Position numbers and translations under genes: made by a program
In this document: piece after piece, positions 495-50,300 of the stretch
Numbering within the stretch: the first letter of the stretch is position 1
Layout of the letters: each line of letters opens with the position of its first letter
NCBI GenBank assembly: GCA_965649825.1
Contig: OZ287694.1
Span: forward strand, 371,197 to 435,196
Direction: 5' to 3'
DNA from: Penicillus capitatus
Taxonomy: Eukaryota > Plantae > Chlorophyta
Length of the DNA stretch: 64,000 nucleotides
Notes under the pieces: generated by a model
What the model was told of the DNA's origin: nothing
Seen by the model: the letters and a program-made list of their open reading frames with translations, nothing else
Databases searched by the model: none

Positions 495-3400
495 TTAGGT
501 TTCGTCGGACAGATGTTGGGCAAATTCAGCTGTCGCAGGACTGAGTCTCGACTTAGCAATCAGGTGCTTGATCTCGTAGCGGATCCAGTGCACCAGGACG
601 CGGAACGCGCCAGCCTCTGGCGCACAGTTTTCGCCCCGCTCTGTCAATCGGTGTCTCACGTACTCAGCTGCGAACTTGAGCATGTAGACTACGAAGACGA
701 AAAAGGTGATGAGGTTCAGAGCGAGACATGTGTCCGTGAGCACTTCACGCGTGTGCTTGCCCATATCGTCCTCGTCTCTGAGGGCAATCGCTATCTGCAT
801 CGTCACCAGCGATACGGACAGCGACGCCACTTCGAATCTATTGAGGTCCTGGAAGCCCTCTCGAAACGGCGCCGCCAGAATCTGCATCACGATGGCAAAC
901 GTGAGCAAAAGCTCAATGCCGGTGGTCGGCATCACGCTGTTGCCGACACGGTCGTAAGCCACAAGAACGGCGATGACTGTCTTTCGGACAAAAACGGCGA
1001 CCTCCCAGTATCGACGGCGATCTACTCGGTAGCAGCGATAGAGGAATCCCGTCGTCTGGTATGCCCAGCTGCTCTTGTGGGCGAGGTGCTGCGGCGCACT
1101 TAGGAGGAAGAAGATGAAGAGCGCGAGCAGTCCGCCGTACACTGGACACACGAACGCAACAACCACTCTGTAGAGGAGTTTCGCGTGGTCGCCTTCGTAG
1201 CACCTCATGCCCGTGTCGACAGCCCAGTACATGTGAGTCGCGTTGACTTGTGCAAAGTCTACCGAGTCGTGCACATCGACGCAGAGGAATACGCTCAATG
1301 CGGTCTTCAGCACCGGCACGAGCGTGACATACCAGATGACCATCGCCGAAAGCACGGATCTCTTCGACAGGTAGCGGCGAAGACCATCGCTTCCAGATTT
1401 CACCGATTTGGCCGCCCAGAACACGATCCAGCAAAGAAACACGGAGCAGGGGACGATGCACACGCCGACGACGAGCGCCAGAGCCGTCGGATGCAAGGAC
1501 AGGTGTTTTGAGGTCAGACACACGACGGATCGTCGAATGCCATCAGACGCGAGACCTCCGAGCAATTCTGACAGCAGCAGAAACCAATGGTCGACAAGCA
1601 GAAACTCACGAAATTCTGGCCTCACCTGCCGCTTCTGCCATGACGATCACAGGAATCGCCCATCCCACGTCAATGGAAGCTAGAAGAACGGTCGTTTGGA
1701 CGTAGCCTAGAGTGATCTACGAGACAACGAGTTAAGTGAGAGATGAACAGATTGACTTGCACCTTGAGCATCTCGACGGCCTTCCACTTGGCCAAAGTTT
1801 TCTCGGAAGCAGGCACTTCGGCGGCTTGGACCTGCAGCGTACTCATTCAGGTCGATGCGCATGTGATATCGTTTCACACGCACTTCCGTCCCGAGGCGTA
1901 TCGATTCGATCTGTTCCGCCGATGTAGACGGTGCACTCTGCTCACGAATCTGCACGACGTCTCCACGCAAAGCGCCGACCGTGCCGTGAATCGTGATGCC
2001 CGTGATTCCCAACAGAATTATCACCGACGCCAGAATGTAGGCCACGTTGAAGAACCCCTTCAAACACCTTTTGCATTCGGAGGATAGACCAGAGCCGAAG
2101 TCTTCTTCGCATGATCCACAAAGTGGGCCCGTGTGACCCTTTTGAAACAGACAAAGATATTTATAACATCCGAAGGATTGAGAATGCAGCTTACTTCGGC
2201 ACACTGAGCTTGTGTGTATTCCTCGATATACTCTTTCTCGAATTCGCAACTCGACACATCGCTGACCATGGCCATCAAGTTCTCGGAGCGGACTACGTAT
2301 TTGCAGGCCGAGGGCACTAGGCATCGTTGAAGGTGAGCCGAACACGGCGTCTTTTGCCAGAAGCCGTCTTCTGGCGTGATCACTCGATACTCGCAGTTCC
2401 CATTCTCTGGACAGAGATGGCAAACGGTCGCTGAAAGACAGAAGTTGTACGTCGTGCTGCTGCAGCTCTCGCAAAATCCAGCAGCCGATACAAACTCGCC
2501 GACAGAACAGTTGTGGACTCTCACGGTAATCCCGATGCTCTTGATCGCTTTTTCGCCAAACTCGACAGTCAAGTTGTACTCTCCCGGAGGAACGTAGCCT
2601 TTGATGGATTGAAAAGTGCAGAATCCATTCTCCATCGACAGGAAAATCGGCCAAAATAAGAATTCACTACTCGGCGACGTCATGTTAGCATTGACTGGGC
2701 GGTAGTTTATTGCGGGTCTTTGCTTGAGTCCGTCCAGTAGCTCGACTATCGCGGTTGGCAGATCTGTGCCAGCCCGGTATCTTTCTACCGCACAGTTCTC
2801 TCCACCGCTCACGCAGACGGCCTTGTTCGTGTCGTCCAACGTCATCTCTGCAGTTGCGGCATACGTCCCGACAATAGGGCCATAAACGCCACCGTGATTG
2901 TCTTTCCAGGAGGGACAAATGTCCTTGTCCGATTTGACTTGGCTCATAGCGTTCCACTCTTGCTCCTTGTAGAAGTCTGATCCAGCGTCTGACGAAACGT
3001 TGGCGCAACGAAAGCGGATAGCTTCTAAATATCCAGTGAAGACGGCTCCTCCAGCAATGCCAGCTTCATTGCTCAAGAATTGCGTTTCGATCAAAGCCAT
3101 GACGGGACAGTCGATGCTGTTGGCGAGGCATTCCTCGATTCTTTTGATGCAGACGAAGAAGAGCCCACCTAGAAATACACATCGTTGTCAGTCGAGCTTA
3201 CAAAGCGGGTGGGTGCCTACCACCCAGATTAGCCACGTTCTTCTCAATGTGGCATTTGACTAATTGCAAGGCCAGACTATACTCCAAGTCAGTGTCAAAG
3301 AAAATTGCGCCGCCATTGCCTCCCTTTGCCGAATTGTTGTAAAGCTTACAGTCCGAACAAAAGATGGTCGATGACGCAAAGCCATACACGCCACCACCGC

Positions 3401-5247
3401 TTTCGTCCGCTTGGCCATAAAGAATGGAGAGATTGCGCGCTACCAAGTGAGACTCCTTTAACCAGATTGCTCCACCGTTTTTGGATTTTGCTCGTTCAAC
3501 CGCTGAGTCAACGATAAAGATTAAGCTGCCCTTCGATGCAGCGGCAAAACCACCATAGACATTGGCCACGCTACTGATAAATTGTGACTGTAAGATATTC
3601 AGAGTCGAATTCCAGGCAAAAAGGAAGCCGCCACGTTTGGAACTGCTGTTGACTGCGGTGGTGTGTTTCACTATCACCGTGGAGTTCGCCGCGTACATGA
3701 CTCCGCCTCTACCATCCGCCTGGTTGCCAATGGCGTTCGTGTCCTCCAACACCACTTCCGAATTCTCTGCGTAGACGCAACTGCCATCTTCAAGACCGAC
3801 GTTGTCATCGAAACCGGACTCAAGCACGGAAACAGTCGACTCTCTGGCAAAGATCGCTGTCCCTCTGACGCCTTCATTCGCACGGAAGCTGCATTCGCGC
3901 ACCTGGGCAGAGGACCTGACCAAATGAAAACAGCAGTTTTCCCTTTTCTTGGCGATTCCTGTCGCAAGAAGATTTCGTTCCACTGACGCATTGGACACTG
4001 CAAGGGATCCGTCTTGGATTTGGATGAGCGTGAGACTGTTGTCGAAAGCCGCGAGTCCTTGGATCGTTGTCTCGGATGACGCAGGACCATAGAATACGGA
4101 CGACGGCTTCACAGCAGCTCCGGACACGGCGTTCTTGAAAACGGCGCAGTTCTTCAACCGGTTCTTTTTCGCAAGGTGGACGATGCGAGCTGCGTCCGAG
4201 CCGACATTCTCCGAGATCTCCACGTCGATCAACTCGACGGTAAAACAGGATGGGGACGACGTCCGCAATACCGAGGCGGCATTCAGTTCGTTCTTTCGAA
4301 AGACGACGCGACGCAATGTGATAACACCGGGGGCATCTGCCTCGCATCCTGTTACTTCGATGATCGCCTGGGCTTCATCTGTGCCACCTTGTGCGCAGCC
4401 TTCGAAGACGACGTCGACGAAAGCGACGTTCTTGGATCTGCGAGAGGAGAAATTTGCAGCGGAATTCGTTCGAGACGGTCTTACTGTACGAGGAAGAGGC
4501 CGGAGTTTCTCTGAGGGCATGTGAATCTTGTTCTTGTCGTCGGGTTCAGAAAGACGGCGTCATTCGATTCGACAACGTCGACTTGAGTGGCGAGAGTCAG
4601 TTGCCAAGGAATCGTGATGCGTGACGACGGACGGATGACGCCGGACACGTCGAACAGGATAACGTCGCCTTCGCTGGTGCAGTTGACAATCGTCTGCACG
4701 TCGTTGTCGATCTCGTGGAGGACGGCGTCGTTGATCAGCCACGTTTTGCCGTCGGCTGCGGTATACCTCTCTCTGGTCACGTCTATCAACGTGCATACGT
4801 AACCTACATGCGTCGGACGCCGTCAAATCTACGCTCTCCGTGCGACAGGTCGAAAAGACGAACCTGTGGCGATTCCTCGACCGGACGGGTTGGACGGCAA
4901 CGTAGCGTGCGCTTCGTTCGTCGGCTACGGAAGAAAGACGCGATGGTTAATGCCCTCGCCTTTGAATGGCGGCAGGCGCATTGGAGACGTACGTCTTGAA
5001 TGGGGTCAGTGACCGGATTGGTTGGTGTGTCAGAAGGTATGGGCGGCAATTCATCGTCCGTTTTGCCTAATACGCCAGACAGCACGGCTTGGAAGATGCG
5101 ACGAAGTTAGAGCGGAAAACCATGAACTGTGGAGACAGCGTTTGGCGGACGCAGTAACGCGCTCTCAACAGCGCACGTAAGTCCGACTCCATACGCGAAC
5201 GCGTAGCAGAGCAGGCAGAGTTTAAAAGGAGTAAGCGTGCTTCGCAT
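495..5247 (-). CDS. Receptor-like gene A (multi-exon): signal peptide, conserved N-domain, PMP-like GGA-repeat beta-helix, Cys-rich region, multi-pass TM C-terminus
   Basis: Exons can be spliced in frame through ~50-nt GT-AG introns. Signal-like MRSTLTPFKLCLLCYAFAYG starts at ATG 5247. N-domain 4481-4789 (DGKTWLINDAVLHEIDND...GDVILFDV). Beta-helix 3198-4440 (GGVMY, GGFLF, GGAIW, GGGVY, GGAIF). Cys-rich 2060-3100 (CESCSSTTYNF...CHLCPENGNC...FW), then GHTGPLCGSC. TM region 495-1625 (YQTTGFLYRCY...YWEV...RK). Confidence 0.85.
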
Positions 5248-6283: not shown

Positions 6284-9200
6284 TCAGACCACACCATCGT
6301 CCAGTCCTTTATCCGTCTTCCAGATATAGTTCTTCGCCAGGTTCAGTTTTTGATTCAGCTTCAAGGTGAGAAACTCTTTGAAGATGGAAAAGAAGGAACG
6401 CGTCTGAGTATTGGATATTCCTTCGATCTCCAAGACGACGCGCATATACGCCACCGTCGCCTGCACGAATTGAAACACGAGATAGCCGAACAGACCGCAC
6501 ACAAAGACGAACAGCAAGGCAGTGAGCACCACGCGCACCACATCTCCAGTGCGACGGTCGTGATAGAAGAGCGCCAGAACAAAGGCAAAATTCGAGACGA
6601 GCAACGAGGCGCCCTCGAGCGTGTTCAGCGAGGCAAACTCGTTTCCGAAGGGATGGGCGACGGTGTGTACGTACATCGCCGTCATCAGTATACAGACAGC
6701 GATGACGGCCTGGAGATTGGCGCCGAGATGGTAGCCGAAGGCAACGACGATCGTCAGCAGCGCCTTGCGCAGCATGATGATGGACTCCCAGTAGATGTAC
6801 TTGTCCGAGTAGGCGCGGTAGAGAAACGCCGTCGCTTCCATGAACCATCCCTCACGCGTCGACGGATCGCGTCTGCGCTGCAGCGTCAGCAGGAGGAAGA
6901 GCGGAAAGCCGGCGGTGAAAACGACGGCGACGGGCCATCCGAGTGTCCCGGCGAGAATGGCGTGGGAGCCTTGGTAGCACTTCAGCGAGGTGGCGCGCGC
7001 CCAGTAGTGGCTGACGTGATCCGCGTCGACGTCGACGGAATCGTGCACGCCGACGCAGTAGAGGACGCTCATGGCGGTCTTGGTTATCCAGACGTAGGTG
7101 AGATAGGCGACGGCGAGTAGACTGAGCGTGGATCGCTGTTTGACGTAGTTCCAGCTCTCGCCGCATTTCCACGCGACGCCGAGCCAGAACACGGCGTACA
7201 GGATCATCGACACGACTGGAATCGCCATGTTGACGATGGCCCAGGCGACGGTGCGCGACACAGGGGCGTCGGCAGGCACGAGACACTCAATGGAGAACGC
7301 GACCGGATTCGACATCATCCCGCCGAGCATGTCTGCAAGAAGACCGTGTGATGGGACGTGCGTCCGAAGCAGTGGTCGGTCGGACCTGTCGAGGACAGCA
7401 GGATGGATGCCGACGGGGTCCAGTTGGCGTTGATATGCACGGCGACGGACAGCACTTGTAAAAAGTTGATCGTGATCTGGAAGGCAGAGAGGATGGAGAT
7501 AGCGTCGTGTGGCGGCGGCGTACTTTAAAGATCTCGACGATTTGGCACTTGGCCGTCTCCGCCCGTCGCTGGCTGTCTTCCCCGAGGACGACGAGCCCGT
7601 GCAGTTGGCTCGACGAAGCGCCTTGTCGACAGCTCTCTTCGCAGGCGGCACTGTCCTCGATCATTTGCAGCGTGACTGGTGCCGAGGACATGCGCGGGAC
7701 GTTGTCTGACGGCGCATTTCGGAGAATGCGCACCATCTGCTGGACGGGAGTCAGGGCGGGTGCCAGACTGCTCTTAATGGCGAAGCTGCTCAGCGCCATA
7801 ACCGTAAGAATCGAGAGAACGACGTAGACGATGCTGAGTCCTTCGTCGCAACGTTCGCAGTTCAGCGACGAAGTGTGACCGAATCCCGGCCGACAGTCGC
7901 CACACAACGGACCCACATGACCCTGCACACGACACAACTGACCCACAGAACCCGGCGGCGAGCTGACGCTAACCTCATCGCACTGCGCTTCGCCGTACTC
8001 GACGTCGACCGTTTCATTGTAGCTGCAGTCCTGCATGTCCGCGGTGACGCTCTCCAGGCTCTCCTCTCGGTCGTAGTCGCAGGCCCCGCGACTCAGGCAT
8101 TCCTGCATGTGTGTGGAGCACGGGTAGCGGTGCCAGTACTTGCGCATGGGATAGATGACGTTCGCCGACGTGCAGTTGGCGTTTTCGGGACACGGTTGAC
8201 AGTCCTCGTGCGTCTTCGACATTCGATACTGCGTCTCGGTGCAGCGCACGCAGAGTTTGCGATCTTCCTTCGGCGCCTCGCCGATGATGCACGAGCGGAC
8301 CGTCACCGCCATCGTCAGCACGGACAGCGCCTTCTCGCTGAAGTCGATCTGCACGACGTAGTTGCCCGGCACCTGCAAACCGCTGATCTCCGAGAACTCC
8401 GCCGTGCCGTCCTCCATCAGCAGACTGACGTTGCCGGGGAACAGCGCGTGGCCTTTCGGCGTCGAATGCATCACGGCTTCGACCGAGCTGTTGCCGGATC
8501 CGACCGCAGGTCCCTGGCCGAACTGATCCACCACGCGCAGTCGGATCTTCGGCAGCGGATCGCCACTGCGGTACGTCGCGAGACGCACGTGTGTCTTCTC
8601 TTTCATCTCTTTCATCTCGGTCGCGTTGCCGCGTCGCTCCTCGAGGGACCAAAAGATGCGACGGGCGTAGGAGGCGACGTCGGGGCCGAAATTGGTTTTC
8701 TGGTTGTGCGTCCACGACGGGCAGAGGCCTTTGTCCGACTTGAGCACGCTCATGCGCTTCAGCTCTGCTGTGGAGTAGAACTGCAATGCGCTGCGTCGAG
8801 GATCTTCGTCGCAGCGAAATCGGAACGCCGTCAGATCGCTAGCGAAGATGCCGCCGCCGCTTTCGGCGCTGTTGTGCGACAGTGTCGTCCCGCCCAGAGC
8901 GACGAAGGTGCAGTTGGCTTTCGGTTCGCTGCAGTTGGCCGATGTGTAGTCGCTCAGGTAGTGCACGCCGCCGCCAAGTGTGGCGTTGTTGCCCCGAAAC
9001 AGACATCCATCGAACTGATAGGCCAGTCGCTGAAAGGAGGCGGAGGCAATCGACACGCCGCCGCCTAAGCGCCCCGCTGCGTTGTCCTCGAAACGGCATT
9101 TCAGGCAAAGGACAGACGACCCCGGATCCGTATGCAGACCACCGCCCGCTTCCTCTGCCACGCACTCGCTCACGTGCAGCTCTCTGGCGCGCAGACGGCT

Positions 9201-12200
9201 CGTAAAGATGCGAATGGCGCCGCCTTTGGCGGCGCGCGCACCGGTGACGGTGAGATTGACGACGTCGATGTCGCTGTCTTCGTCTGCGTCCATAAAGCCG
9301 CCCGTCCGGTTGGCCCAGCCGCCTTCTGCCTTGGCGTTGCGAATGGTCACATCGCTTCCGCGACACGACAGGAATCCTCCTGTCTGCGACGTCCCGTTGA
9401 CGAACGTGGCGTTGCGCAACCGCAGCGACGACTGCTGGACGGCAAGGGCGCCGCCTCTATCGGAAACGAGGCATTCTCTGAAGACCGAGTCCCGCAGTAT
9501 CGCTCTGGACTCCTCGAAGAGATAGAGACCACCGCCGCTGACCGCTGCGTTCTTGACAAAGGTCAATCCGCTCGCCGTCACATTCGACTCGGCGCTGAAA
9601 AGACCTCCGCCTCGGTCTTGGGCCCTGTTCACGACAAACTGCGAATCACTGAGCTCAACACGGGCGCAGCGATCGGCGTAAATCCCTGCACCGTCTTCAC
9701 TCGCCTCCCCGGCCGTCATCGTCACGCCATTCAGCACAAGAGGGCTGTTACGCGCAAAGATCCCTGCGCCAAACTGCGCCCTGTTCTGCGAGAAGGTCGA
9801 TTGCGTCACGTTCGCCAGTTCGGCGTGCAGAATGCACAGTCCAGCGCCCATAAGGCGACAGCTGTTCTGGACTATACGCACGCGCTGTGCGTGCATCGTG
9901 CTGAGCGATGCGTGAATGCCGCCGCCGTGACCCTTGGCCTCGTTTCCGTACAGATCAGAATCGGCAATGCGCAGCACACTGCGCTCTTCGATCTGAATCC
10001 CGCCGCCCACGTCTCGCGTCGCGTTGTTTCGATGGAACTTGCAGGATTCGACCGTCGCATTGGCGAGGTACACGCCGAGCCCGGCGCCATTCCCTGCGAC
10101 GTTGGAGGTAAAAACGCACGACACCAGCGTTCCGCGCGAGTCTTCGAGCAGCAAACCGCCGCCGTCTTTCCCCGCACGGTTGTCCGAGAATTCCGTATCC
10201 GTGGCGACTAGCACGGCTCGGTTCTTCACTTTGACGCCGCCGCCATCGCGGTTGGCGTGATTGTTTGCGACGGTGCATCGGGTCAGTTGCGTCTTGGGAC
10301 TCTCGATGAGCATCGCGCCGCCAGAGTCGGTAGCTTCATTGCCGGTGAGCACGACGTCCTCAAACGTCGCGTTTCCGTCGTGGATGTGGACGCCGCCTCC
10401 GGATCGCGCCTCGTTGTTCCGAAAGGAGCTGTTCGTAAAAAGCGCGTCCCCTCTCTGCTCGAACACACCTCCGCCCAGCTCGGCGACATTGGCTCTGAAC
10501 ACGCTGCGCTCCACGGACCACTGTCTGGCGTCTTCGATGTAGAGAGCGCCGCCCCACGACGCCGTGTTGCTCCTGGCTCGCAAGCGACGGAGACGACCAG
10601 TGGCGCCCTCCAAGAAGAGGCAGCCGCCATTGGCGCGAGCTCTGTTACCGCGGCAGTCGATGCGATCCAGAGCTGCATGTACCTGGCGCAGAGAGACAGC
10701 GCCGCCGGACTTGGCTGCGGCGTTGCGCTCAAAAAGACACCTGTCGATTCGGAGCGAGCCGGCTGAGGCGAACAGAGCGCCGCCGTCTCCCTGGACGCCG
10801 TTGTCTACGAAATCGCAGCGTCGCAGCGTCACGTTGCTGTCGGTTGAGGAAAGAGAGCTCGTTTGCGTCTCCGTCGTCGAGGCGCAGCCCAACGCGCCGC
10901 TGTGACCGAGCGTCGCCGCGTCATCCGGTGCCGTCACTTCGATTCCTGTCTTCTTGTCGCGGTTCCGTCGAAAACGGCAGTCGATGATCTCTGCGACGCT
11001 TCCCGATTCCAATTGCACGAGCGGCCCGTCGCTGTTCCTCACGAAAACTGACGTCCTTAGCGTCAACGTGCCGCCAATGACCTGTAGTCCAGCAATCGCA
11101 TTGCCACTAACCTCGAGACCAACGACGATGGTAACAGAGCCCGGCCTCGCGCTCAAGAGTGACGGCCGTCGCTGAGCATCTGATGCGACAGGCGCATTGC
11201 CTTTGATAGTAATCTGTCTGAGATCGCTGACACCGGAAAGCTGGGCGAAGCACGCGTCCCCGCAGACGTTATCCGCGAACTCCACGTCGACCATCTCCAC
11301 TGTAGAACACTCAGAGCCTTGCACAGAGAAAGCCATCGCTCCGTCCAGAACATTGCGGCGGAACGCCACGTGACGCAGCTGGACCTTTCCGCCGCCATCC
11401 TCGGCGCTGCATCTGTCTACCTCGACAACGGCGCCGTCTTTCTCTTCCAGACGGCAGTCTTCGAACGCCACATTCGCGAAAAGAACGTTCCGTGTCCTGC
11501 GCACCACCCGGTCGTCTTTTGTCTGCACCTCACGTCGCGCCTCACTTGACGAGAAAGGCTCCGCCGTTCCGAGGGCATTGGAAGACGGTTTGTTTATCCG
11601 CCTTCGGAAAAATGCCCTGTTCCAGATCGACGGATGCCGTGGCGGAACTCAGCGTCAGGTTGTGGGGTATGGTGATACGCCTGGGAGACTTGATCGGCGC
11701 GGCGACGTCGAATAGAATGACGTCTCCGTCGTCGCTGCAGTCGATCACGCTCTGCACATCGTAAGAGATCGAATCCAATCCTCGATCGTTAAGCGACCAC
11801 GTCCTCGACGCCACGTGATACATCTCATCAATTTCGCTCCTTGTCAGACGGCAGGTCTCATCTGCACAGGTAACAACGAAAAGAGTGAGACATGGTGTGG
11901 AGTCCACCATACCTCCTTGATTGAGGGTGGCATCGCGGCGCTGATTCAGGGAGCGGGAGGCCGTTCGTTGTCGAGGCTGCAGACACGGGTAACGACGTGA
12001 CGTTTGGTCATGGAAGGGAGAGGAGCGTACATGCCAGAACGTCGTCGTCTTTTCATCGCCATCTCCGTATGCGTATACCGACGGGGTCGAGTCTCCTTTC
12101 TCGCCTGTACCATAACGCGAGTTCACAAGAGGCGGAGTGCATCGCACGACGCGCTGCGCATTCGCAGACGAGACGGCAAACGTGCGCAAAGAGACGAGGG

Positions 12201-16244: not shown

Positions 16245-19200
16245 ATGATGCGAAACTTTCTTCCCTGTCTCAAGCTTTGTCTGCTCTGCTGCGCCCTTGC
16301 GCAGAGAGTCGGACTTACTTGCGCTGTTCAACGCGCGTTGCTGCGTTCGTCAGACGCAGTTTCTGCAGCCGACGGTTCTCCTCCGCGAGCTGCGTCGCAT
16401 CTCTCCAGCGGTGCTGTGTTGCATTTTAGGCTACACGGAAGACAAACTGCCGCCCACACCGTCTGAAACGCCAGCCGACCTCACCGCAAAGCATCCTCAA
16501 TACGTAAGCCACGAATTCGCCTGTCTCCATTCGACGGCGAAGGCGTAAACCATTCCGTCTTTTCTCTCCGTAGACGGCAAAAGAGGAGCGCGCCCCGCCA
16601 GTTTACAGCACATTTAATCAAGGAATCACTACAGGTTCGACTTTTCTTGTCCATTGCACTGAACGCTGAGTTCTGACGATGTTTAAACTTGTCAGGGTTC
16701 GCATGTGCTTTGACGCGAGAAGACAAGGAAAAATATACCACAATGGACGGCCAGACATGGCTCGTCGACGACGGTGTCCTTGGACAAATTGACAACGACC
16801 TGCAGATGCTCGTCAACTGCACAAAGCAAGGCGATGTACTCGCGTTCAACGTGACAGGCGTCGTGCGTCCATCGTCGCCTGTCACCATTCCATGGCAACT
16901 GACCCTCACCACCCAAGTCAGCGGCGTCGACTCCAAAGACGCCGTCTCCCAAAGTTCAACCGCAAAGACAAGATTTACATGTCCTCATAAGAACACGGGA
17001 CTCTTTCTCGTTCAGTAAGACGAACTCGTCTGAGATCGTCATTCTTTCTCTTCTCCCATAGGTCCGGAAACATCACCTTCTCTAACCTTGTCTTCGAGAA
17101 GTGCACATTCGAGAGTGCTAGCAGTGAGGCCCAATCGCTTATAGAAGTCGCATCCTGTAACAGTCGGAATGCATCTGGCCTCGTAACTCTGCGGCACGTC
17201 GCCTTTCGGAAGAACAGACTGATTGGAGCCTCGGCACTTCGAATGTCTTCCCCGTCGTGTTCAGAACTGAAAATGGTTGAGGCGGAGATCTCGGAGAACG
17301 TCTGTTCGGGCGAGGCTTGCGGAGTTTACATCGGAAAGCAAGCCCGGTTGGAAGACTGCACTGTATTCGGGAACACGGTAGACAAAGCCAACGCCCGACA
17401 GTCGTCGTCCCTGATCTATGGCGAAACCTCATCCACCACGACGATCCAAGCTTTCAAGGCTACGGAAAACTACCTAACCGTCATCCAGATCAATGACGGC
17501 TCCCTTTCAGTGACGAAGACGACGTTTAGCCAGAATTCTCTCGATCCAAGTATCGCCGAAGAAATGAACAGTCCATGCTTTCACTTGGTCAAATCATCTG
17601 CCCAAATCAAGGACAGCATGTTTGTTGCAAACGAAGGCTTCAGAGGAGCAGCAATCTTTGCTGATCAGACAAGTATTTCCGTGCTCAACTCAACCTTCAA
17701 CAATAATGCCGGCTTCGAGAATGGTGGATGCATCTACCTGGCAAGCTCAACAGCGAGCGGCAAGCATATAAACGCATCCAGCAATAGCGCAGAGATACGC
17801 GGAGGATTCATGTTGGTGACAAACTCGACGGTGGTGCTCGACGACACGAACGCGGCCAACAATCGTGCACAAGAGCGGGGCGGATTTATAAGCGTCGAAA
17901 ACTCAAACATGACACTCCAGCGCACAAAAGCGACGGCCAACGGTGCAGGAATGTACGGCGGATTCATGTCAGTGTGGGACTCGAGAGTAAAGCTGGAGGA
18001 TACGAACGCAGTGAACAACAGTGCACAAGTGCGTGGTGGTTTCGCACATATGGAGCAGTCGACTGCAACGCTCAAGCACACCATCGGGACATCCAATAGT
18101 GCGGGAGACCTTGGCGGTTTTGTGTTTGTGTGGAACTCGACGGTGAAGCTGGAGAATACGCACGCGCTGAAGAACAGTGCACAATCACGTGGCGGCTTTG
18201 CGTACATTGAGCAGTCGATTGCAACGCTCGAGCGCACCAACGGGACATCCAACAACGCAGGAGACATTGGCGGCTTCATGTTTATGGCGAACTCGAGAGT
18301 GAAGCTGGAGGATACAAACGCGCTGAACAACAGTGCACAAGCGCGTGGTGGTTTCGCGTTCATCGAGAACTCGAATGCGACACTCGAGCGCACCGACGGC
18401 ACATCCAATAGCGCAGGAGACATTGGCGGCTTCATGTTTACGTGGAACTCAAGGGTGAAGCTGGAGGATACAAACGCGCTGAAGAACAGTGCACAAGCGC
18501 GTGGTGGTTTCGCACACATTGAGCAGTCGACTGCAACGCTCAAGCACACCAACGGGACGTCCAATAGCGCAGGAGACCTTGGCGGCTTCATGTTCGCGTG
18601 GAACTCGAGAGTGAAGCTGGAGGATACGAACGCAGTGAACAACAGCGCAGAAGCCCGTGGTGGTTTCGCCTACATTGAGAACTCGAATGCAACGCTCGAG
18701 CGCACCAACGGGACATCCAATACAGCAGGGGACATTGGCGGCTTCATGTTTACGTGGAGCTCGAGCGTGAAGCTGGAGGATACGAACGCGCTGAACAACA
18801 GTGCACAAGCGCGTGGTGGTTTCGCACACATTGAACAGTCGACTGCAACGCTCAAGCACACCAACGGGACATCCAATAGCGCAGGAGACCTTGGCGGATT
18901 TATGTTCGCGTGGAACTCGACGGTGAAGCTGGAGGATGTGAACGCAGTGAACAACAGTGCACAAGAGCGTGGCGGTTTTGCACACATTGAGCAGTCGACT
19001 GCAACGCTCAAGCGCACCAACGGGACATCCAATAACGCAGGAGACCTTGGCGGCTTCATGTTTGCATGGAGCTCGAGAGTAACAGTGGAGCACACCACCG
19101 ATATCAACAGCAAATCCAACCATGGAGGCTTTATCTGGACAGGGAATTCGAGTCTGGACATCTCGCAATCACGATTCCTTCGCGGCTCCGCGAACGTTTC

Positions 19201-22200
19201 TGGTGGTTTTGCTGCGGCAAGTGAAAACAGCTCGATCCTTATCGTTGACTCAGCGGTTGAACGAGCAAAATCCAGAAACGGTGGAGCAATCTGGTTAAAG
19301 AAGTCTCACTTGGTAGCGCGAAATCTCTCCATTCTTTATGGCCAAGCGGACGAAAGCGGTGGTGGTGTGTATGGCTTTGAGTCATCAACTGTCCTCTGTT
19401 CAAACTGTAGTCTTAACTACAACTCGGCTGAGGGAGGTAACGGCGGTGCAATTTTTATTGATGCTGGCTTGGAACAGAGTCTGACTCTGCAATTAGTCCA
19501 AAGCCACGTTGAGAACAACGTGGCGAGGATGGGAGGTACGCACTCGTGTTTTAGTACAACTGTCAACGATATGTATGTGCAGGTGGACTCTTCTTCGACT
19601 GCAGCGAAAGCGTAGAAGAATGCCTCGCCAACAGCGCCGACTGTCCCGTCATGGCTTTGGTGGAAACACAGTTCTCGAACAACGAAGCCAGCATCGCGGG
19701 AGGAGCGGTCTTCGCTGGATACTCAGAAGCCATCCATTTGCGTTGCACCGACGCTTCGTCAGACGCAGGACTAGACTTCTACAGGGAGCAAGAGTGGAAA
19801 GACCTGAGGCAAGTCGAATCGGACAAGGACATCTGCTCGTCGTGGAAAGGCAATCGAGCCGAGGTATATGGACAGGATATCGCGACGTATGCCTCAGCTG
19901 CACAGATGACGCTTGACGATGCCAACAAGACCGTCTGCGTGAGCGGAGGAGAGAACTGTGTGATCGACGGATACCAAATTGGCACAGATCTGCCGACGGC
20001 GACGGTGAAGCTGCTCGACGGACTGGGGCAGATAACTGCAACAATCCACCGCCAAATCAATGCTAACATGTACTCGTCGAATAGTCAATTCTTGGTTTGG
20101 CCAATTCTTCTGCCGATGGAGAATGGATCCTGTACATTTCAATCCATCAGAGGCTTCGTACCTCCGGGAGAGTACAGCTTGATCGTCGAATTTGACAGAG
20201 AGGCGATCAAGGACGTCGGGATTACCGTGAGAGTCCACAACTGTTCCGTCGGCGAGTTTGTGTCGAACGCTGGATTCTGTGAGAGCTGCAGCGGCACAAC
20301 GTACAATTTCCTCCTTTCAGCGACCGTTTGCCATCCCTGTCCAGAGAATGGGAACTGCGAATCTCGGGTGATCACACCAGAAGACGGCTACTGGCTAAAG
20401 ACGCCGTGTTCCGATAATCTTCACAGATGTCTACCGACCTCTGCCTGCGAGTCTCAAGGCCGTTCCGAAAAGTTGAAGACCATGGTCGAAGATGTCACGA
20501 GCTGTGATCTCGAGGAAGAATGGATCGAAGAGTACACACAGTCTCAGTGCGCCGAAGTAAGCTGCTTTCATGATTCTTCAGATGGTTAAATCATCTCTCT
20601 TCGAAAGGGTCACACGGGCTCACTCTGTGGATCCTGCGAAGAAGCTTTCGGATCTGGTCTGTCGTTCGAATGCAGACGGTGTCTCAAGGGCTTTATCAAT
20701 GTGGCCTATATTCTGACGTCAGCGGCAATACTGTTGGGAATCACAGGCACCACAATTCAAGGCACGGTCGGCGCTCTGCGCGGAGGCATCGCACAGACTC
20801 GCAGCCTGAGGACAGCGTCTTCATCGACGGAAATCGTCATTGAATCGCCACGTCTGCGAACTGAAGTGGGCGTAAAAGACATCATCAGTGCGTCTACCCA
20901 ACGAGTACGCTGTAGGTCCAAGCTGTCGGGGTGCCTGCTTCTGAGAAAACTTTGGCCAAGTGGAAGGCCGTCGAGATGCTCAAGGTGGAAGTCAATCTGT
21001 TCATCTGTCGCTGAACTCGTTGTCTCGTAGATCACTTTGAGCTACGTCCAAACGACTGTTCTTCTGGCTTCTCTTGACGTCGGATGGGCGATTCCTGTGA
21101 TCGTTATGGCAGAAGCGGCAGGTGAGGCCAGAATCGCGTGAGTTTCTGCTTGCTAACTGTCATACTGCTGCTGTCAGAATTGCTCGGAGGTCTTGCGACG
21201 GATGGCATTCGACGATCCGTCGTATGTCTGACAACGAAAGACCTGTCCTTGCATCCGACGGCTCTGGCGCTCGTCGTCGGCGTGTGCATCGTCCCCTGCT
21301 CCGTGCTTCTTTGCTGGATCGTGTTCTGGGCGGCCAAATCGGTGAAATCTGGAAGCGATGGTCTTCGCCGCTACCTGTCGAAGAGATCTGTGCTTTCGGC
21401 GATGGTCATATGGTATGTCACACTCGTGCCGGTGCTGAAGACCGCATTGAGCGTCTTCCTATGCATCGACGTACACGACTTGACAGACTTCGCTGAGGTC
21501 GATGTAACTCACATGTACTGGGCCGTCGACACAAGCATGAAGTGCTACGAAGGAGACCACGGAAAACTCGTCTATGGAGTGGTTGTTGCGTTTGTGTGTC
21601 CAGTTTATGGTGGATTACTAGCGCTCTTCGTTTTCTTCCTCAAACGTCCACCCCAGCACCTCACCCACAGAGCTGGCTGGGCGTACCAGACGACGGGATT
21701 TCTTTACCGATCTTACAGAATGGATCGCCGTCGATACTGGGAAGTCGCCATCGTCGCGAGGAAGGCCATCATTGCTTTTCTGGTGTTCTGCGCCCACCTG
21801 TTCGACAGCGGACTGCCGATCACCGGCGTCGCATGTGTCATCATGCTTGCCATCCTGGCTCAGATTCTGGCAATGCCGTTCCGCGAAGACTTCAAAGACC
21901 TGAATGGAATGGAACTGGCGTCTCTTTTCGTGTCGGTGGCGACGTCGTTGGCAGCTGTCATGCTCAAAGACGAGAGCTACCCTGAAGACTTCACTCGTGT
22001 GTTGCTCACGGTCGCGTGTGCTTTGCTGAATGTCGTTGCGTTCTGCGTCTTTGTTTTCTACATTCTCAAGTTTGCAGCTGAATACCTGAAGTATAAGTTG
22101 AGTGAGCGAGATGAGCTCTTTGCACCCGATGCTGGCATGTTCCGCGTTCTGGCGCACTGGGTCAGTTACGAAGTCAGACATTTGATTGGCAAGTTGTGCC

Positions 22201-23806: not shown

Positions 23807-24385
23807 TCAGTCAGTATACTGCTCTATGACAGCAATAAAACTCCGAGGATCGTGTCTGATCTCCATCACTGGGAACACCGGCTGTCCCACTCCGACGATT
23901 CCATCATCCTTAGTCGCACTTGGGGGAGTCGTCCCAGTAGAAACAACTGGCCCAGCTTCCACAACAGGATTCTGAACAACTCTATCGGGAAGCAGGACAG
24001 ACTCTACTGCCTCCTCAGACTCTACTGCCTCCTCAGACTCTACTGCCTCCTCAGACTCTACTGCCTCCTCAGATGCTATCGAAGCAGCAGCATCCAAGGC
24101 TGGGACCGATTCAAGAGCTTGATCTGAGGATATTCCCACTACCTCTTCCAGATCTCCTGCTTCATCCAGTCCCATCGTATCATCCAAAGACACAGCTTCG
24201 ACGCCAATGACATCCACTGCCGATACAGATCCCGTAACCAGCTCTGCATTCAAAGCGGCCGAATCTACGATCTGTTTTCTCTCGGCAGTGCAGAGCCGAC
24301 CCCCAACATCTCCAGCCGCTCTTGCAGACGTAACAACAGTATCACATGCAGCGATGTCTTTGTCTGGACTCATCAACGATTCCAC
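23807..24385 (-). CDS. Acidic low-complexity ORF of unknown function, possibly an exon of a larger gene at about 22.4-25.1 kb
   Basis: 192-aa D/E/S/V-rich ORF containing (EEAVES)x4. No recognisable domain. Confidence 0.3.
   Translation of the reverse strand: MESLMSPDKDIAACDTVVTSARAAGDVGGRLCTAERKQIVDSAALNAELVTGSVSAVDVIGVEAVSLDDTMGLDEAGDLEEVVGISSDQALESVPALDAAASIASEEAVESEEAVESEEAVESEEAVESVLLPDRVVQNPVVEAGPVVSTGTTPPSATKDDGIVGVGQPVFPVMEIRHDPRSFIAVIEQYTD
23999..24070. repeat. Perfect 18-bp tandem repeat x4
   Basis: AGACTCTACTGCCTCCTC x4. Confidence 0.95.
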
Positions 24386-26260: not shown

Positions 26261-27782
26261 TTCTTTCTCGATCGAGTGCTTAAACGATGTTGCGTAGATT
26301 GTTAATGGTTTGTGATTTGAATCGTAGAAGAACGAAACTTTAAAAATGCAGAGCCTTTCGCAAAAGAAAGACAACAACTATACTTCTACAGCGCTTTTGT
26401 CACGCTCTCGCATTGTTGATGTCATCTCGTTTGGACTGTCACATCGTTCCTGCCTCGTTTTTACGGGGTCTGTCTTTCAAGAGGCGCTCGTACAAGGTTT
26501 ACGTCCTCTCAGGAGCACTTAGCTATGGCTCTGAGAGTCAAATGACTCGCCTGACCTGTGAAGTTATTGCACAATACGTGCATAAATGGGCGCATACAAA
26601 CCTCGAAACAACCTTGCCTTCCAAGCTGTCACGCGGATGCGCCGCGCTAAAACGTACTGCACAGCGGAAGACTTTGTTGTGTTTACAGAGCAGGTCAAGA
26701 AAAGTTAAGATTGTCCATTATATATGCGCGTGCTGAGGTGACTTTCTAGGCATATGAGTCAACCTGTGCGCAGAGCCGGAAGAAAGGAAAACCCTTTCAC
26801 AGAAGAAAAGCCTTTCTGATGTGACATAAGCGTCCTTCCCACTAGGGTGACCCACATAGAAGAAGGCAGTCACATCACCATGACGAATCTTGGCGACACA
26901 AGCTTCAAAAGTTTTCCACTGTTGGTTCTCTCGAGTGCGACCAGCGCCTCGACAGTTTTATAGTGTTTTAGTGATGTAATATCAAGGCGGCGCGAGATTA
27001 TTTTTAGTAACAAAAGAAGAATATTCCGGAATCTGCTCGGAATCTGTGATATAGAAGGCACGGGCCTATGTTTAGATTGAAAGGTGGAGGGAAGTCAACG
27101 AGAACCTACGACCTGTTATTTAGAGATTGACATACGTGTAAGTAGAAGATGAGCTCATTATTAAGAGCGATGTAGATTACCACAACAATGGAACGTGTCG
27201 GCGGAATTCGCGATTGACGTTGTCATTGGCCAGGGTGGAGAACAAACGTTTCAAAGGTCGGGAAGCAATCCACAACTTAAGCCTCCCCGCCTCATGACTT
27301 TCTAGGCAAATTAAACACCAAATCCCCATAAGCAGAAAATAGAATCTCCTAACGCACTCAGGCCCCGCGTGACATGACAGCTAGCGCCTCTTTTAAACAG
27401 ATGGCCCACCCTTTCACAACAAGACAGTCATATCGCCATAGAGAAGGTCTCGGTGACAGTGCGACATATATCGCTATGATTATTGGGCTGATGGGCATTT
27501 ACTTGGCATTTTGTGATCCTTGTGCTTAAGGCACACGCTTCGACCGTCGCTACGCATGGTGCAGAAGTCGGAGTAACAAGAAGAGCGAATATTCCGATAC
27601 CGTAGCGTGATTGGCCATCGGCTGGATCGACGTTTCCTTGCAGCTTCCTCTTCCGACGGTTGTTATTTAAAACTCGCGTCGCGATTGGCTAATCGAGCGA
27701 CACAATGCAGTGACAACGTCACATCAACTGAAAGGTATATAAGTGGTGACGCACTCCACTTTCCGTCATTCTTTCTTTCCGT

Positions 27783-28561: not shown

Positions 28562-28899
28562 TTATGCTCGTGACAATCTTGTAAAAAAGCATTTCATCTT
28601 ATGCTCGTGACAATCTTGTAAAAAAGCATTTCATCTTATGCTCGTGACAATCTTGTAAAAAAGCATTTCATCTTATGCTCGTGACAATCTTGTAAAAAAG
28701 CATTTCATCTTATGCTCGTGACAATCTTGTAAAAAAGCATTTCATCTTATGCTCGTGACAATCTTGTAAAAAAGCATTTCATCTTATGCTCGTGACAATC
28801 TTGTAAAAAAGCATTTCATCTTATGCTCGTGACAATCTTGTAAAAAAGCATTTCATCTTATGCTCGTGACAATCTTGTAAAAAAGCATTTCATCTTATG
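28562..28899. repeat. Perfect 37-bp minisatellite x9, no spacers
   Basis: ATGCTCGTGACAATCTTGTAAAAAAGCATTTCATCTT starts at 28564, 28601 ... 28860, with period exactly 37 and identical units. Confidence 0.97.
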
Positions 28900-29093: not shown

Positions 29094-29160
29094 TAGGGGT
29101 CTGATGAGACGGGTGGCGCCGTCGAAACTGCTCGGTCACTCGACTGAACAGTCACCCTAG
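29094..29160 (+). ncRNA. Type I hammerhead ribozyme
   Basis: CUGAUGA at 29101-07. Stem II GACGG/CCGUC with loop GUGGCG. GAAA at 29124-27. Stem III CUG..UCGGUC(ACUC)GACUGA..CAG. GUC triplet with predicted cleavage after 29153. Stem I GGGU(29097-100)/ACCC(29154-57), extendable past a bulge. Confidence 0.88.
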
Positions 29161-30209
29161 CCTGAGGCGGTGTTGTGCGAATTCGCTCGAAAGGGCAAAG
29201 GGATGTGCGTTCGCGGTAGGCTGTTCGTTTGTGAAAACGTACAGATCGCAATTACGATCCTGTGATCCTGTGAACGTCGACCTGACGGCCGAGTCCGGAC
29301 CGGATAGCGAGTCGCGCAGGGGACTGTGGCCGAGCGATGTGACCCTGCCTAGTTTCTGAGGGGGCCACGTCCTGGGGGGTGTTGGTTGAGTCACCCGAGG
29401 CCATTTTCTCTGGCTCTGAGGTTAGGGTGATTCACCTGCCTAGTCCAGTCGCGTCATTATGCGGGTATTTAAGGCAAGAATCTGAACCACTGAACGCCTT
29501 GCTCTGTAAACGAGAAAGACTTCCGCTGTTATCGTTTTCGTTCGGCGCCTCTGCGCGACAGGGACTCCGTCGGCAATGCTATTTACATAGCTAGAGGACG
29601 AACACAACAGGGCAGTTCTGTTTAAATACCCAGCAGTGTGAGAGTCACATCATTATGCAAGCACATCGTCACTCACACCTCGCGTCATGCGCGTTCCAGT
29701 GATGTTCTGCTGGCGTGGCGCCACAAGGACGGTTGGCACGCCAGCAGCGACTCCTCGCCAGAAGACCCGAGGAGGAACCAGCTACCTCTCACACACACCT
29801 TTCACAGATCCAACGCGTCCGTTTTTTAATGTTCATTTTGTCTAGATGTCAGAGCGATGTGACTGTCGCCGAGCGATGTGACACTGCCTTGTTCTGTGGG
29901 GGTCAGCCATGCGCAGAGGCGCTGCCTGTCTTGTCAACTGTCGTCAACGGACCACTTTCTCTGGCTTTTGGGCGGAGTTGACTCACCCGTCTTATCAATG
30001 GGGGAAATTTATAGGACGCTTTGGGATACATGTTTGATTTTTGCGCACTCTGTAAGACCTTGTTTTCGGCCATCCTGGAACGCAGCAACGACGAGTAGGA
30101 ACCGCGACGCGGCAGCGAATCGACGATGACAGAAGAACCGCGGACGATGTCGACATATCTACTCGTGATCTGGACATCGGCCGAGCTCCGACACGTAAAC
30201 AGAAGACTT

Positions 30210-30247
30210 GAGGGTTTCGACGGTGCCACCCGTCTCGTCAGACCCCT
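30210..30247 (-). ncRNA. Second hammerhead catalytic core, inverted; no adjacent cis substrate strand found
   Basis: The minus strand reads AGGGGU-CUGACGA-GACGG-GUGGCA-CCGUC-GAAA-CCCUC. It differs from the first hammerhead at only 2 positions over the shared ~34 nt; the flanks are unrelated. Confidence 0.7.
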
Positions 30248-30479
30248 TCGCGTCGAGGCACCGAAACCCTCGACGCGATCCGGAAGAATCCGGATTGGCT
30301 AGGATGACCCCAAGCCCACCCTCCCCACCGAACCAGCGACGCGTCACCCGAAGGTGGCGTGGCACTAGCGCAGCAGAGCCGTATGCCTTAAGCGTCCGGC
30401 GGAGCGCAAACTTCGCAGCCAGGTGTGGAGGTCATCAGCGTCCCCGAAGGGAAGCCTCGCAACGCGCCTTCGACACTCC

Positions 30480-30797: not shown

Positions 30798-30987
30798 CGG
30801 AAAGCCGAGAGCGAGAACGCCACCAGTAGAACCGCCAAAACGACAAAAGACGAAATGCGCGTCGCGGCGATCCTTATATACCTAAAAAGTGATGTGACCC
30901 TCTTGTCACGTCAATCTGTTGACGGTTAAACCACCGAAGGTGCGTGTTGATTGGCCGAATCGACGAGAAATTGATGTGACAGCCGGT

Positions 30988-31086
30988 GATGGAATATTCT
31001 GAAGTGACGGATGGAATATTCTGAAGTGACGGATGGAATATTCTGAAGTGACGGATGGAATATTCTGAAGTGACGGATGGAATATT
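30988..31086. repeat. Perfect 22-bp tandem repeat x4.5
   Basis: GATGGAATATTCTGAAGTGACG starts at 30988, 31010, 31032 and 31054, with a partial copy at 31076. Confidence 0.95.
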
Positions 31087-47355: not shown

Positions 47356-50300
47356 CTGTAGAGAAAGTAGAAGAGCAGAATCATCAGCATGAGAAACGGC
47401 AACGTCAATGGCGTCAACACCGCTACCATCACCAACGTCGACGCCAACTGCAGCGCACTTCTGCGTCACATCATCGGTTAGCCACGTCACATCACGGAAG
47501 AGCGGACGACCTGACGAAGAAGGAGATAAAATCGACGAGATTCTTGTCGATGTCGGCCGTGTCTTTGGTCACACGGTTGATGATGCGACCCACCGGTGTA
47601 GTATGGCAGAACGACATCGGTGCCCGAATCAGTTGCCACATCATGTTTCGGTGCAAGACGTCGGAGGCGATGCGTCCCAGTCTCTTGAAATACAACTGAT
47701 TGATAAGGCTGACCGATACCTGGCCCAAGAGAATGGCGCCGTAGATCCACATGTAAAACATCTCTCCGTGATCGGCATCGTCACCAGCGTTGGTCCAGAC
47801 GGTTAGCCAGATGGTTCCGGCCACGCGGATCGCTTCGCCCATGGTGAACTGGAACATGAGGAAGAGGGAAGGCACTCGGCCACCCATCGCAGCGACGTAG
47901 CTTCAGATCACTTTGAGAGAGACCAGTCCGATGGAACGACGCTCTTTCTGTATCAGCTGCGATTCTTTGATCTCTGCTGAGGTCGTTGATGTGACAGCAG
48001 CACCTTGCGCCGCCGCCGCCGCCGCCTTTTGCGGTTTTCGGATCGCTTCGAATTCTCCCCGGCCAATTCCTCTTCGACCAGAGTCTCGGCCATCATCTGC
48101 GCGAAGCTTCCGTTTGGTTTAGCCATGAGCGACGCAGAGGTGCCTTCGTCCGTGATCTTGCCGTTGTGGATGTAGAAGATGTGATCGACAACATTTACGT
48201 ACTGCAGTTGGTTTGTCACCAACACCATCGTCTTGTCCTTCATGGCTCCCTTGATGCATTCGTGGAAGACATTGCGCCCGACGTGCGCGTCCAGCGCAGA
48301 GAGGGGATCGTCCAGGAGGCAGATATCCGCATCGGCATACACCGCCCTGGCCAGGGCGATTTTCTGTTTCTGTCCGCCAGATATATTAATCTCCTTCTCA
48401 TCCAGTTCTGTCTGATCGCCGCCTGGCAGCACCTCCAAATCTGGAATCAAACTGGCGGCGTGAATGGCGGCGGCGTGAATGGCGGCGGCGTGAATGGCGG
48501 CGGCGTGAATGGCGGCGGCGTGAATGGCGGCGGCGTGAATGGCGGCGGCGTGAATGGCGGCGGCGTAGCGCCCTTCGTCAAATGCCGATCCGAAGAGAAT
48601 GTTGTCGCGCATGGTGGCGTTGATGATGAAGGGCGTCTGCGGGATGAGTGCCAGTCGACCGTGCACCGGCGTCTCCGTGCCGGCGACGTCCTGCATCAAC
48701 CCAACGATGCTGGACAGAATGGACGACTTGCCGGAGCCTGTTGGACCCGCAATGGCCGTCAACGAACCGGCAGCGATGTTCAATCGGAGTCCTGGCAGAA
48801 CAACGCCGTCATTTGTATTCCACGCAAAATCGCCGTGCACCTCCACAGCGATCTCTCCTACATCACCACAGCCACTGACGCCAACCCCTCGCCGTGTGAT
48901 GGGGGGACCTTTGGCTGCGGGAGGCATAAACGTGGCTTCCGGCTGCTCGTTCGATTTGAGAAACGCCTCCAGACGCTTGAGCGATACATTCGCCTGTGGC
49001 ACGTGCATTGTATGGAGGCGTAGAGAGATGCTGAACAGACTTGTGTGAGTTGGGTGATGACCTGAGGGAGTTGAAACATCGGAAATCGCAGAATGTTGAA
49101 CAGGGTCAGCGAGACGAACGCCTTCGATGCCGTCAGTTCGTTCCCGATGAGGTCATAGACGGCAAAGGTGGAAACGGAGACCACCGATGGGACACTGGTC
49201 ACGATGAAAGTATTCACCGCACCTACACACGCCCTCCACCTCGACAGAACTATCGAGGGTCAGCGGAGGCGCACTGAGGACAAAGGACTTCCAGAGAATG
49301 CCGAGCTCCCGTCCACGAACGGCCAGGATGCGATTCCAGAACGGCTTCTCCCGAGCATTGCATTTGACGGCGTCGACGCCTAGAACGAGAAGGCGGTGCA
49401 CGTGGGGTAGATGGGATGGCGAGGGGATGTATTGCCTGAGACGAGTTCTCCTTCGAGCTTTGCCCTTTCGTCCGTTTCTTGCAGCGCTCGACGGACAAAG
49501 CCAGCAGACCACCGCACAATGGCTGTCTGTACTGGGACCAAGACGAGCAGCGACGCCACAGCGACAAGGGATGAGACACCGAGTTGGCGAAAGAGCATGG
49601 CGGAGGCGCCAATCATACGCGGCGGAGCGGACATCGGACTCAACGAATTCTGGCAGGCCAGTTGAGGCGCTTCGGAATCTGAGGCGACAAAGTTGAAGAT
49701 CTGTCCGGTGGGAGAAGGCAGCTCGATTGGTGGGTTGGATGTAGAGCGATTTACGATGGACCTCCGTCGTAACGATCGATCGCATTTGGAATCCGGCACG
49801 CATCACGCGCTGGAAGTGCTGGTTGTCGGCGAGGGTGCCGAGAATGAGGGCCACGAACATCGACACGACAATGGTGTATCCCTTCCACGAGGGCTCGTCA
49901 TCTTCGACCGTTTTGAGCAGGAGATCCAGAAACACCGGCGCGGTAAACTGCGCGGCGTCGTTCATGAGCTTGAGGGGAACGGCCTGTAGCGATGGCATCT
50001 CACACAACGGGTCACATCAAAAAGTGCGACCAAACTTGGAGGAAGAGGCGCTGAATGCATCTCCACAGCGCACGGAAAAGACTGGGCTGTTGCCACCTCC
50101 TGGGTCCCCGTCCCCGTCTGAGCAACATCTCACTCTTCCAGTGCTTCTGAAACGTATTCAAGAGCGACTGTGCGCGATCGGGGCGATCCAGCAGCCAGAT
50201 GTCTTCGAAATCTAGCGGCTGTTTGTAGCCTTGAGGCAGAAAGAGAGAGATCCACGTGAAGAGGAGACGCGACAGGATGCTCACTCGATTCTCCAGAATG

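Follow-up and report, generated by a model that had tools for sequence, protein, structure and literature searches.

The window analyzed here, the whole 64-kb stretch of DNA, is eukaryotic, with open reading frames (ORFs) matching Bardet-Biedl protein 5, EMC6, a NatA auxiliary subunit and ABC transporter domains. The region from 22 to 37.5 kb contained no long ORF and no Pfam domain, and comprised perfect minisatellites and several diverged local duplications. Two complete hammerhead motifs, termed HH1 (plus strand) and HH2 (minus strand), lie within it (Table 1). The hammerhead core occurs only at these two places in the 64-kb window, and the gene caller placed no gene over either motif in the contig. 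Minisatellites with 100% match between repeats flank the hammerhead pair (37 bp × 9.1 at 28562–28899 and 22 bp × 4.5 at 30988–31086), and further perfect arrays were seen at 23998–24073 (18 bp × 4.2) and 48454–48566 (15 bp × 7.5). Diverged tandem duplications of 72–85% identity (27773–28057/28109–28554 and 30477–30646/30656–30805) include strings resembling splice donor, branch-point and acceptor sites, and may represent unannotated genes with small exons and introns.

Table 1. Features of the hammerhead locus, in window coordinates
Feature	Position	Strand	Basis or remark
HH1, complete type I motif; C17 = 29153, predicted scission 29153/29154	29096–29162	+	Read from sequence
HH2, complete motif, type III topology, 114 nt	30204–30317	−	Three-way junction is the free MFE of 30322→30200 and 30314→30207
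HH2 helix III 5' strand, GGGCUUGGGGU; U16.1 = 30307	30307–30317	−	MFE pairing with 30215–30204: 4 bp, 1-nt bulge, 7 bp
HH2 cleavage-site nucleotide C17 (GUC triplet); predicted scission 30306/30305	30306	−	Fold and homology to HH1 site
HH2 helix I 5' strand, AUCCU, positions 1.1–1.5	30301–30305	−	Pairs with GGGGU at 30246–30242
HH2 unpaired AGCCAA atop helix I	30295–30300	−	AGCC also adjoins helix I in HH1
HH2 insert hairpin P1a in helix I, UCCGGA-UUCU-UCCGGA	30279–30294	−	Pair probabilities 0.9–1.0
HH2 insert hairpin P1b in helix I, 11 bp, 9-nt loop	30248–30278	−	Includes partial inverted copy 30257–30271
HH2 helix I 3' strand, GGGGU, positions 2.5–2.1	30242–30246	−	Same as HH1 29096–29100
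HH2 core CUGACGA, positions 3–9	30235–30241	−	Differs from HH1 at N7 alone
HH2 helix II GACGG/CCGUC, loop GUGGCA	30219–30234	−	Pair probabilities 0.91–0.93
HH2 core GAA (30218–30216) and helix III 3' strand from A15.1 = 30215	30204–30218	−	
Promoter-like core GTCACATC-N10-GGTATATAAG	27718–27743	+	1.35 kb upstream of HH1, same strand
Second promoter-like core, same pattern	30873–30898	−	0.56 kb upstream of HH2, same strand
Interval between predicted cleavage sites, 1152 bp	29154–30305		Two promoter-like modules inside
Orphan cleavage-site-like string GGTCACCCTAG	26842–26852	−	No enzyme strand nearby

The enzyme strands of the two motifs are closely related. Positions 29095–29128 (plus) and 30247→30214 (minus) were identical at 32 of 34 nucleotides (blastn E 3e-8), which bears out the inverted match described in the original prediction. 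Written as RNA, the block reads GGGGU CUGAUGA GACGG GUGGCG CCGUC GAAA C in HH1 and GGGGU CUGACGA GACGG GUGGCA CCGUC GAAA C in HH2. The two differences from HH1 to HH2 are U to C at core position 7 and G to A in the final base of loop II, both positions being free to vary in hammerhead descriptors (PMC8557442, PMC3088659). The helix III arms are distinct, as had also been noted (CCCUC in HH2 versus CUGCUC in HH1). HH1 pairs GGGGU with ACCCU in helix I and ACUG with CAGU in helix III, with an inner GGUC/GACU, and carries a GUC triplet. Its hammerhead-constrained fold (−33.0 kcal/mol) lay 3.2 kcal/mol above the free MFE (−36.2 kcal/mol). On this model, self-cleavage of a plus-strand transcript is predicted between 29153 and 29154.

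HH2 had been described as lacking a substrate in cis and as having flanks unrelated to those of HH1; neither description held. Both strands were scanned for a U-H site whose 5' side pairs with the HH2 helix III arm and whose 3' side pairs with GGGGU. A substrate strand pairing both arms of the second core, CUUGGGGUC/AUCCUAGCC (the slash marks the predicted scission), was located on the minus strand at 30314→30297, which places it on the strand of the enzyme block and 55 nt upstream of it. It is identical to the HH1 cleavage-site strand at 11 of 12 positions. The 12-mer GTCAYCCTAGCC has exactly two sites in the 64-kb window, 29151–29162 (plus) and 30308→30297 (minus), which adjoin HH1 and HH2 respectively, each on that hammerhead's own strand. 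Arithmetically, about 0.015 exact matches are expected per window; in a shuffle control allowing one mismatch 0.35 matches were expected, and two matches were also obtained in 6 of 100 shuffles. A chance substrate with at least five helix III and at least five helix I pairs within 300 nt would be expected 0.015 times. With the substrate strand included the motif spans 30204–30317, so the 30210–30272 originally assigned to it was too short. The related pattern GGTCAYCCTAG matched twice in the window against 0.02 expected. The orphan string in Table 1 sits inside a diverged promoter-like module and may therefore be a motif of that module.

Unconstrained folding of HH2 returned a hammerhead junction with an unpaired core as the MFE structure, both for a 123-nt RNA (30322→30200; −56.9 kcal/mol, z −2.5) and for a 108-nt RNA (30314→30207; −49.1 kcal/mol, z −2.66). 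Unlike these, a 146-nt context yielded a competing MFE. In the hammerhead MFE, C17 is unpaired, helices I and II each have 5 bp, and AGCCAA and two hairpins make up the 53-nt insert that closes helix I. The elements follow one another along the minus strand as 16.x, C17, 1.x, insert, 2.x, core, helix II hairpin, GAA and 15.x, and the fold leaves helix III open and helices I and II closed, as in type III hammerheads. Every core position is canonical. The CUGANGA...GAAA core is present as CUGACGA (30241–30235) and GAAA (30218–30215), helix II begins with G-C, A15.1 (30215) pairs with U16.1 (30307), and GUC/A at 30308–30305 leads into helix I. Self-cleavage of a minus-strand transcript is predicted between 30306 and 30305.

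Helix I of HH2 includes two G·U pairs and, with its branched 53-nt insert, reached pair probabilities of about 0.2–0.3. The insert hairpins P1a and P1b are self-contained and leave the junction free in the fold; in P1b, 10 of 11 pairs had probabilities of 0.86–1.0, with 0.5 for the outermost U-A pair. AGCC is kept beside helix I in HH1 (29159–29162, 3' of the helix), in HH2 and, as AGCCAA, in a metagenome contig described below (343–348). Its GCC is complementary to GGC in loop II, without covariation. A tertiary contact between the AGCCAA segment and loop II of HH2 is possible, judging by this complementarity, and pseudoknots of the helix I–loop II kind are common in hammerheads (PMC3088659).

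The 15-nt partial inverted copy reported at 30257–30271 is present. It supplies the 5' arm and the loop of P1b, and its sequence complements the 3' half of the enzyme strand. Within the insert it repeats the 3' half of the ribozyme (30211–30228) as a fold-back copy interrupted by a gap of 2 nt, which suggests that part of P1b arose by local inverted duplication. The copy had been proposed to sequester the second core in a hairpin, and HH2 to be an enzyme strand without a substrate of its own, acting in trans or at a distance or switched by this copy. Folding 30275→30130 alone does pair the inverted copy with the enzyme strand, and partial substrate-like strings were seen on the minus strand at 26855→26844 and 30902→30891. 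However, the sequestered fold was the MFE only when the folded segment omitted the upstream substrate strand; in full context it was 6.4 kcal/mol worse than the hammerhead fold, with a pair probability of about 0. P1b would moreover be transcribed before the enzyme strand, so that it should form first, with kinetics favouring the active fold. The cis substrate is homologous to that of HH1, and window-wide trans substrates were at or below chance (7 matches versus 13 expected, and 1 versus 0.7). We consider a trans-acting or switchable HH2 very improbable.

Read along its own strand, HH1 has the order enzyme–substrate and HH2 the order substrate–enzyme, which makes HH2 a circular permutation of HH1 and not its mirror image. 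The helix III pairs 15.3–16.3 and 15.4–16.4 change on both sides between the two motifs (U-A to C-G and G-C to C-G, respectively) with pairing kept; this covariation comes from two sequences, HH1 and HH2, among the three core instances known. At helix I position 1.2, a C to U change (ACCCU in HH1, AUCCU in HH2) retains a G·U pair. Given the permuted block order, the intact core and the compensatory changes in helix III, the suggestion that HH2 is a decayed inverted copy is not supported as it was put. The observations of the original prediction were partly confirmed and its interpretation partly supported.

We consider it probable that HH1 and HH2 are two permuted, cis-acting copies of one hammerhead family. 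HH1 would be a type I motif composed of enzyme strand, helix III hairpin and cleavage-site strand, and HH2 a type III motif that starts with the cleavage-site strand, has the 53-nt insert closing helix I and leaves helix III open. Both would be oppositely oriented copies of a small hammerhead-bearing repeat family, each lying sense-downstream of a promoter-like core and each acting, if transcribed and catalytically active, independently of the other. The permutation suggests that the family once went through a circular or tandem RNA intermediate, in line with proposals made for retrozymes and Penelope-like elements. In a repeating unit of this type, an enzyme strand could use the substrate strand on either side; a copy opened in the helix III loop would present as type III and one opened in the helix I loop as type I.

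HH2 could instead be a silent relic, untranscribed or non-cleaving in place, its sequence intact through past selection on a mobile ancestor or through youth. The non-coding, repeat-rich surroundings without a conserved domain are compatible with this, as are the weakness of helix I, whose large insert contains the fold-back repeat of the ribozyme 3' half, and the non-canonical appearance of the lone relative outside the window. The core of HH2 nevertheless has zero damaged positions, double changes preserve helix III, the insert is organized as two self-contained hairpins that leave the junction free, and a promoter-like core lies upstream. We consider a relic rather unlikely.

The 26-nt pattern that defines the promoter-like cores matched twice in the window (0 expected). 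These two near-identical cores face each other and bracket both hammerheads, each being sense-upstream of one of them. The octamer GATGTGAC, which is the reverse complement of the first half of the pattern, was about ten-fold over-represented in the window (34 occurrences versus 3.3 expected) and is often paired about 20 bp apart, mostly between ORFs (for example 29856/29875, 47465/47486 and 50413/50434). The octamer probably serves throughout the host genome as a promoter or transcription-factor motif; no counterpart was found in the literature. The promoter-like cores look like ordinary promoters of the host genome. Four diverged modules of about 250 bp were also seen at 26400–26660 (plus), 26580–26900 (minus), 29300–29620 (plus) and 29835–30160 (plus), so that two of the four, both plus-oriented, lie between the hammerheads. 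Their layout comprises GATGTGAC, CTGCCT, GGCTCTG, TGACTCA, a TATA-like box and then CTCTGTAA, and a role as promoters for a small family of genes or RNAs is possible.

The predicted cleavage sites, 29153/29154 (plus) and 30306/30305 (minus), lie about 1.15 kb apart and enclose 1152 bp. No ORF above 108 aa, no credible ORF of any length and no Pfam domain was found in this interval. The original suggestion of a convergent ribozyme pair delimiting a unit of about 1 kb holds as regards geometry, in that the motifs are on opposite strands and enclose this segment. A functional coupling would go further: transcripts from the facing promoter-like cores would each be trimmed by their own hammerhead into uncapped, largely complementary RNAs that start at the ends of 29154–30305 and overlap across it. 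Such RNAs could serve as precursors of double-stranded RNA or antisense regulation, or the cleavages could terminate convergent transcription.

Both motifs are complete and inward-pointing, the near-identical promoter-like cores also point inward, and the 5' ends of both predicted products share 9–10 nt, A(C/U)CCUAGCC, all of which would suit such coupling. Geometry is nonetheless the only link between HH1 and HH2, the interval holds two more promoter-like modules that are both plus-oriented, and copies of the module elsewhere have no hammerhead. The distances from promoter-like core to ribozyme are also unequal (1.35 versus 0.56 kb), and the metagenome relative has no second motif on its 1.2 kb. 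We regard a coupled pair as unlikely. A purpose-built convergent unit, with two inward promoters and hammerheads of opposite topology releasing both strands of the 1152-nt segment uncapped, appears distinctly unlikely.

An arrangement of hammerheads of one family on both strands, about 1.15 kb apart, would also be expected of a DNA copy of an ambisense, viroid-like rolling-circle RNA replicon with one hammerhead per polarity. This seems barely credible here, as the locus resides within a 1.84-Mb eukaryotic DNA contig without flanking unit-length direct repeats, and the interval shares promoter-like modules and the genome-wide motif with neighbouring host DNA. The interval RNA folds into a branched structure and not the rod of a viroid, and holds no ORF with a known domain.

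A set of comparisons bears on a mobile origin of the permuted copies. No ORF for a reverse transcriptase (RT), GIY-YIG or transposase protein was found within 15 kb of the hammerheads, and no RT or GIY-YIG Pfam match was obtained among 92 stop-to-stop ORFs of at least 70 aa (22.0–37.6 kb) or 109 ORFs of at least 130 aa (rest of the window). Self-comparison of 26–33 kb gave no pseudo-LTRs, the 34-nt core being the sole inverted match around the hammerheads. The window has one motif per strand, with no tandem copies and no LTRs in the manner of a retrozyme, and no tandem array or terminal repeat tying the locus to a mobile element was found. A terminal-inverted-repeat transposon was considered and rejected, with no target-site duplication read in the sequence at the ends of the 34-nt arms. 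Telomere association was likewise discarded, as the window has no telomere-like arrays.

Type III hammerheads are found in plant viroids, satellites, retrozymes and many bacteria. HH2 resembles them in its canonical core, GUC triplet, closed helices I and II, open helix III and free MFE. It differs in that helix I carries a branched 53-nt two-hairpin insert and not a simple loop, and in its location in the nuclear DNA of a eukaryote taken to be flagellated and non-plant-like, a setting in which type I predominates (PMC7229834). It also escapes detection by RF00008. In the 3' UTRs of rodent Clec2 genes, an insertion separates the enzyme and substrate strands of a discontinuous hammerhead. The two strands of HH2 are separated in the same way, but the gap is merely 53 nt and is taken up by two hairpins, which makes long-range pairing unnecessary. 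Hammerheads of metazoan genomes are mostly type I and those of plant genomes type III (PMC7229834), and all three permuted architectures occur naturally (PMC3088659).

Opposite-strand hammerhead pairs 100–700 bp apart in Schistosoma have been ascribed to truncated Penelope-like elements, for which a circular RNA template has been proposed (PMC4209133). Insertions of these elements often carry an inverted truncated copy (PMC8557442), and protist and fungal elements of this group bear type I hammerheads whose helix III is large (PMC4209133). The present locus is similar in being a eukaryotic genomic, opposite-strand pair in which HH1 is type I with a large helix III (compare PMC4209133, PMC8557442). 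In contrast to Penelope-like elements, it has no RT/GIY-YIG ORF or pseudo-LTR tandem within 15 kb. HH1 and HH2 are also permuted and not mirror copies, with flanks that are unrelated as inverted sequence beyond the 34-nt core, and helix III is long here, unlike the minimal dimer-dependent form. The link to Penelope-like elements drawn in the original prediction accordingly stays an analogy, no such element being detectable nearby.

Among retrozymes, those of plants are of the LTR type and carry type III hammerheads (PMC4918200), and those of metazoans are of the non-LTR type and carry type I hammerheads within tandem repeats (PMC7229834). The locus is likewise non-coding and hammerhead-bearing, and retrozymes are thought to pass through circular RNAs; a similar passage would explain the circular permutation of HH1 and HH2. 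In retrozymes, however, hammerheads in direct orientation liberate a unit from one strand, whereas HH1 and HH2 are on opposite strands. Because the protein and pseudo-LTR features of Penelope-like elements and the direct repeats of retrozymes are absent, we class the locus as resembling these elements and not as a member of either.

Neither hammerhead was matched by the Rfam hammerhead models at gathering threshold, in the window or in narrow slices. Sub-threshold scores were obtained for HH1 with RF00008 (18.7 bits; threshold 48.5) and RAGATH-1-hammerhead (15.4 bits; threshold 56.3). For HH2 there was no Rfam hammerhead match at E ≤ 10, even with the substrate strand included. The misses probably arise from the long inserts in helix I of HH2 and helix III of HH1.

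Searches for relatives gave 0 matches in viral contigs and 0 in bacterial and archaeal genomes. Two matches were returned from JGI metagenomes. One of these (L002), which lies in coding-like DNA and lacks helix I, was dismissed as a chance match. The other (L003), a 1.2-kb contig, has the same 33-nt core at 97% identity with the remaining sequence unrelated, and by this similarity its core is a true relative. A covariance model built from HH2 alone aligned a block at 338–390 consisting of UUCCC-AGCCAA, nine bases and the GGGGU-core, which places the helix I strand and AGCCAA upstream of the enzyme strand in the same order as HH2. No canonical cleavage triplet adjoins that helix I strand, and no second motif was found on the 1.2 kb. 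As a complete ribozyme L003 was rejected, since three candidate substrates were unconvincing and hammerhead-constrained folds were 9–13 kcal/mol above the MFE; by these models it has either decayed or departs from the canonical form. An ORF (511–1106) that follows about 130 nt downstream of the core weakly matches the C-terminal end of a trypsin profile (E 0.1), and the block is possibly located within an intron. Sharp conservation of the enzyme block in three unrelated contexts argues for ribozyme constraint or a mobile origin.

Closely related type I and type III hammerheads next to each other at one eukaryotic locus would capture, in nature, circular permutation inside a single ribozyme family, and would indirectly support circular or tandem RNA intermediates of genomic hammerhead repeats. 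Both motifs fall below the Rfam thresholds and illustrate a long-insert hammerhead class missed by standard annotation. Where an enzyme strand has no downstream substrate, the upstream sequence should be checked before it is called orphan or trans-acting. A convergent unit, if true, would give a eukaryote a source of double-stranded or antisense RNA whose limits are set by ribozymes, and co-expression of the pair, if found, would make it possible to test whether ribozymes define the ends of sense and antisense RNAs.

Outside the hammerhead region, a 790-aa ORF (17243–19615, plus) without a Pfam match contains a 156-bp (52-codon) repeat in 7.2 copies at 17957–19080. Right-handed beta-helix domains were identified in ORFs of 1413 aa (7287–11528, minus) and 440 aa (3198–4520, minus), the former also matching the polymorphic-membrane-protein (Chlam_PMP) repeat.
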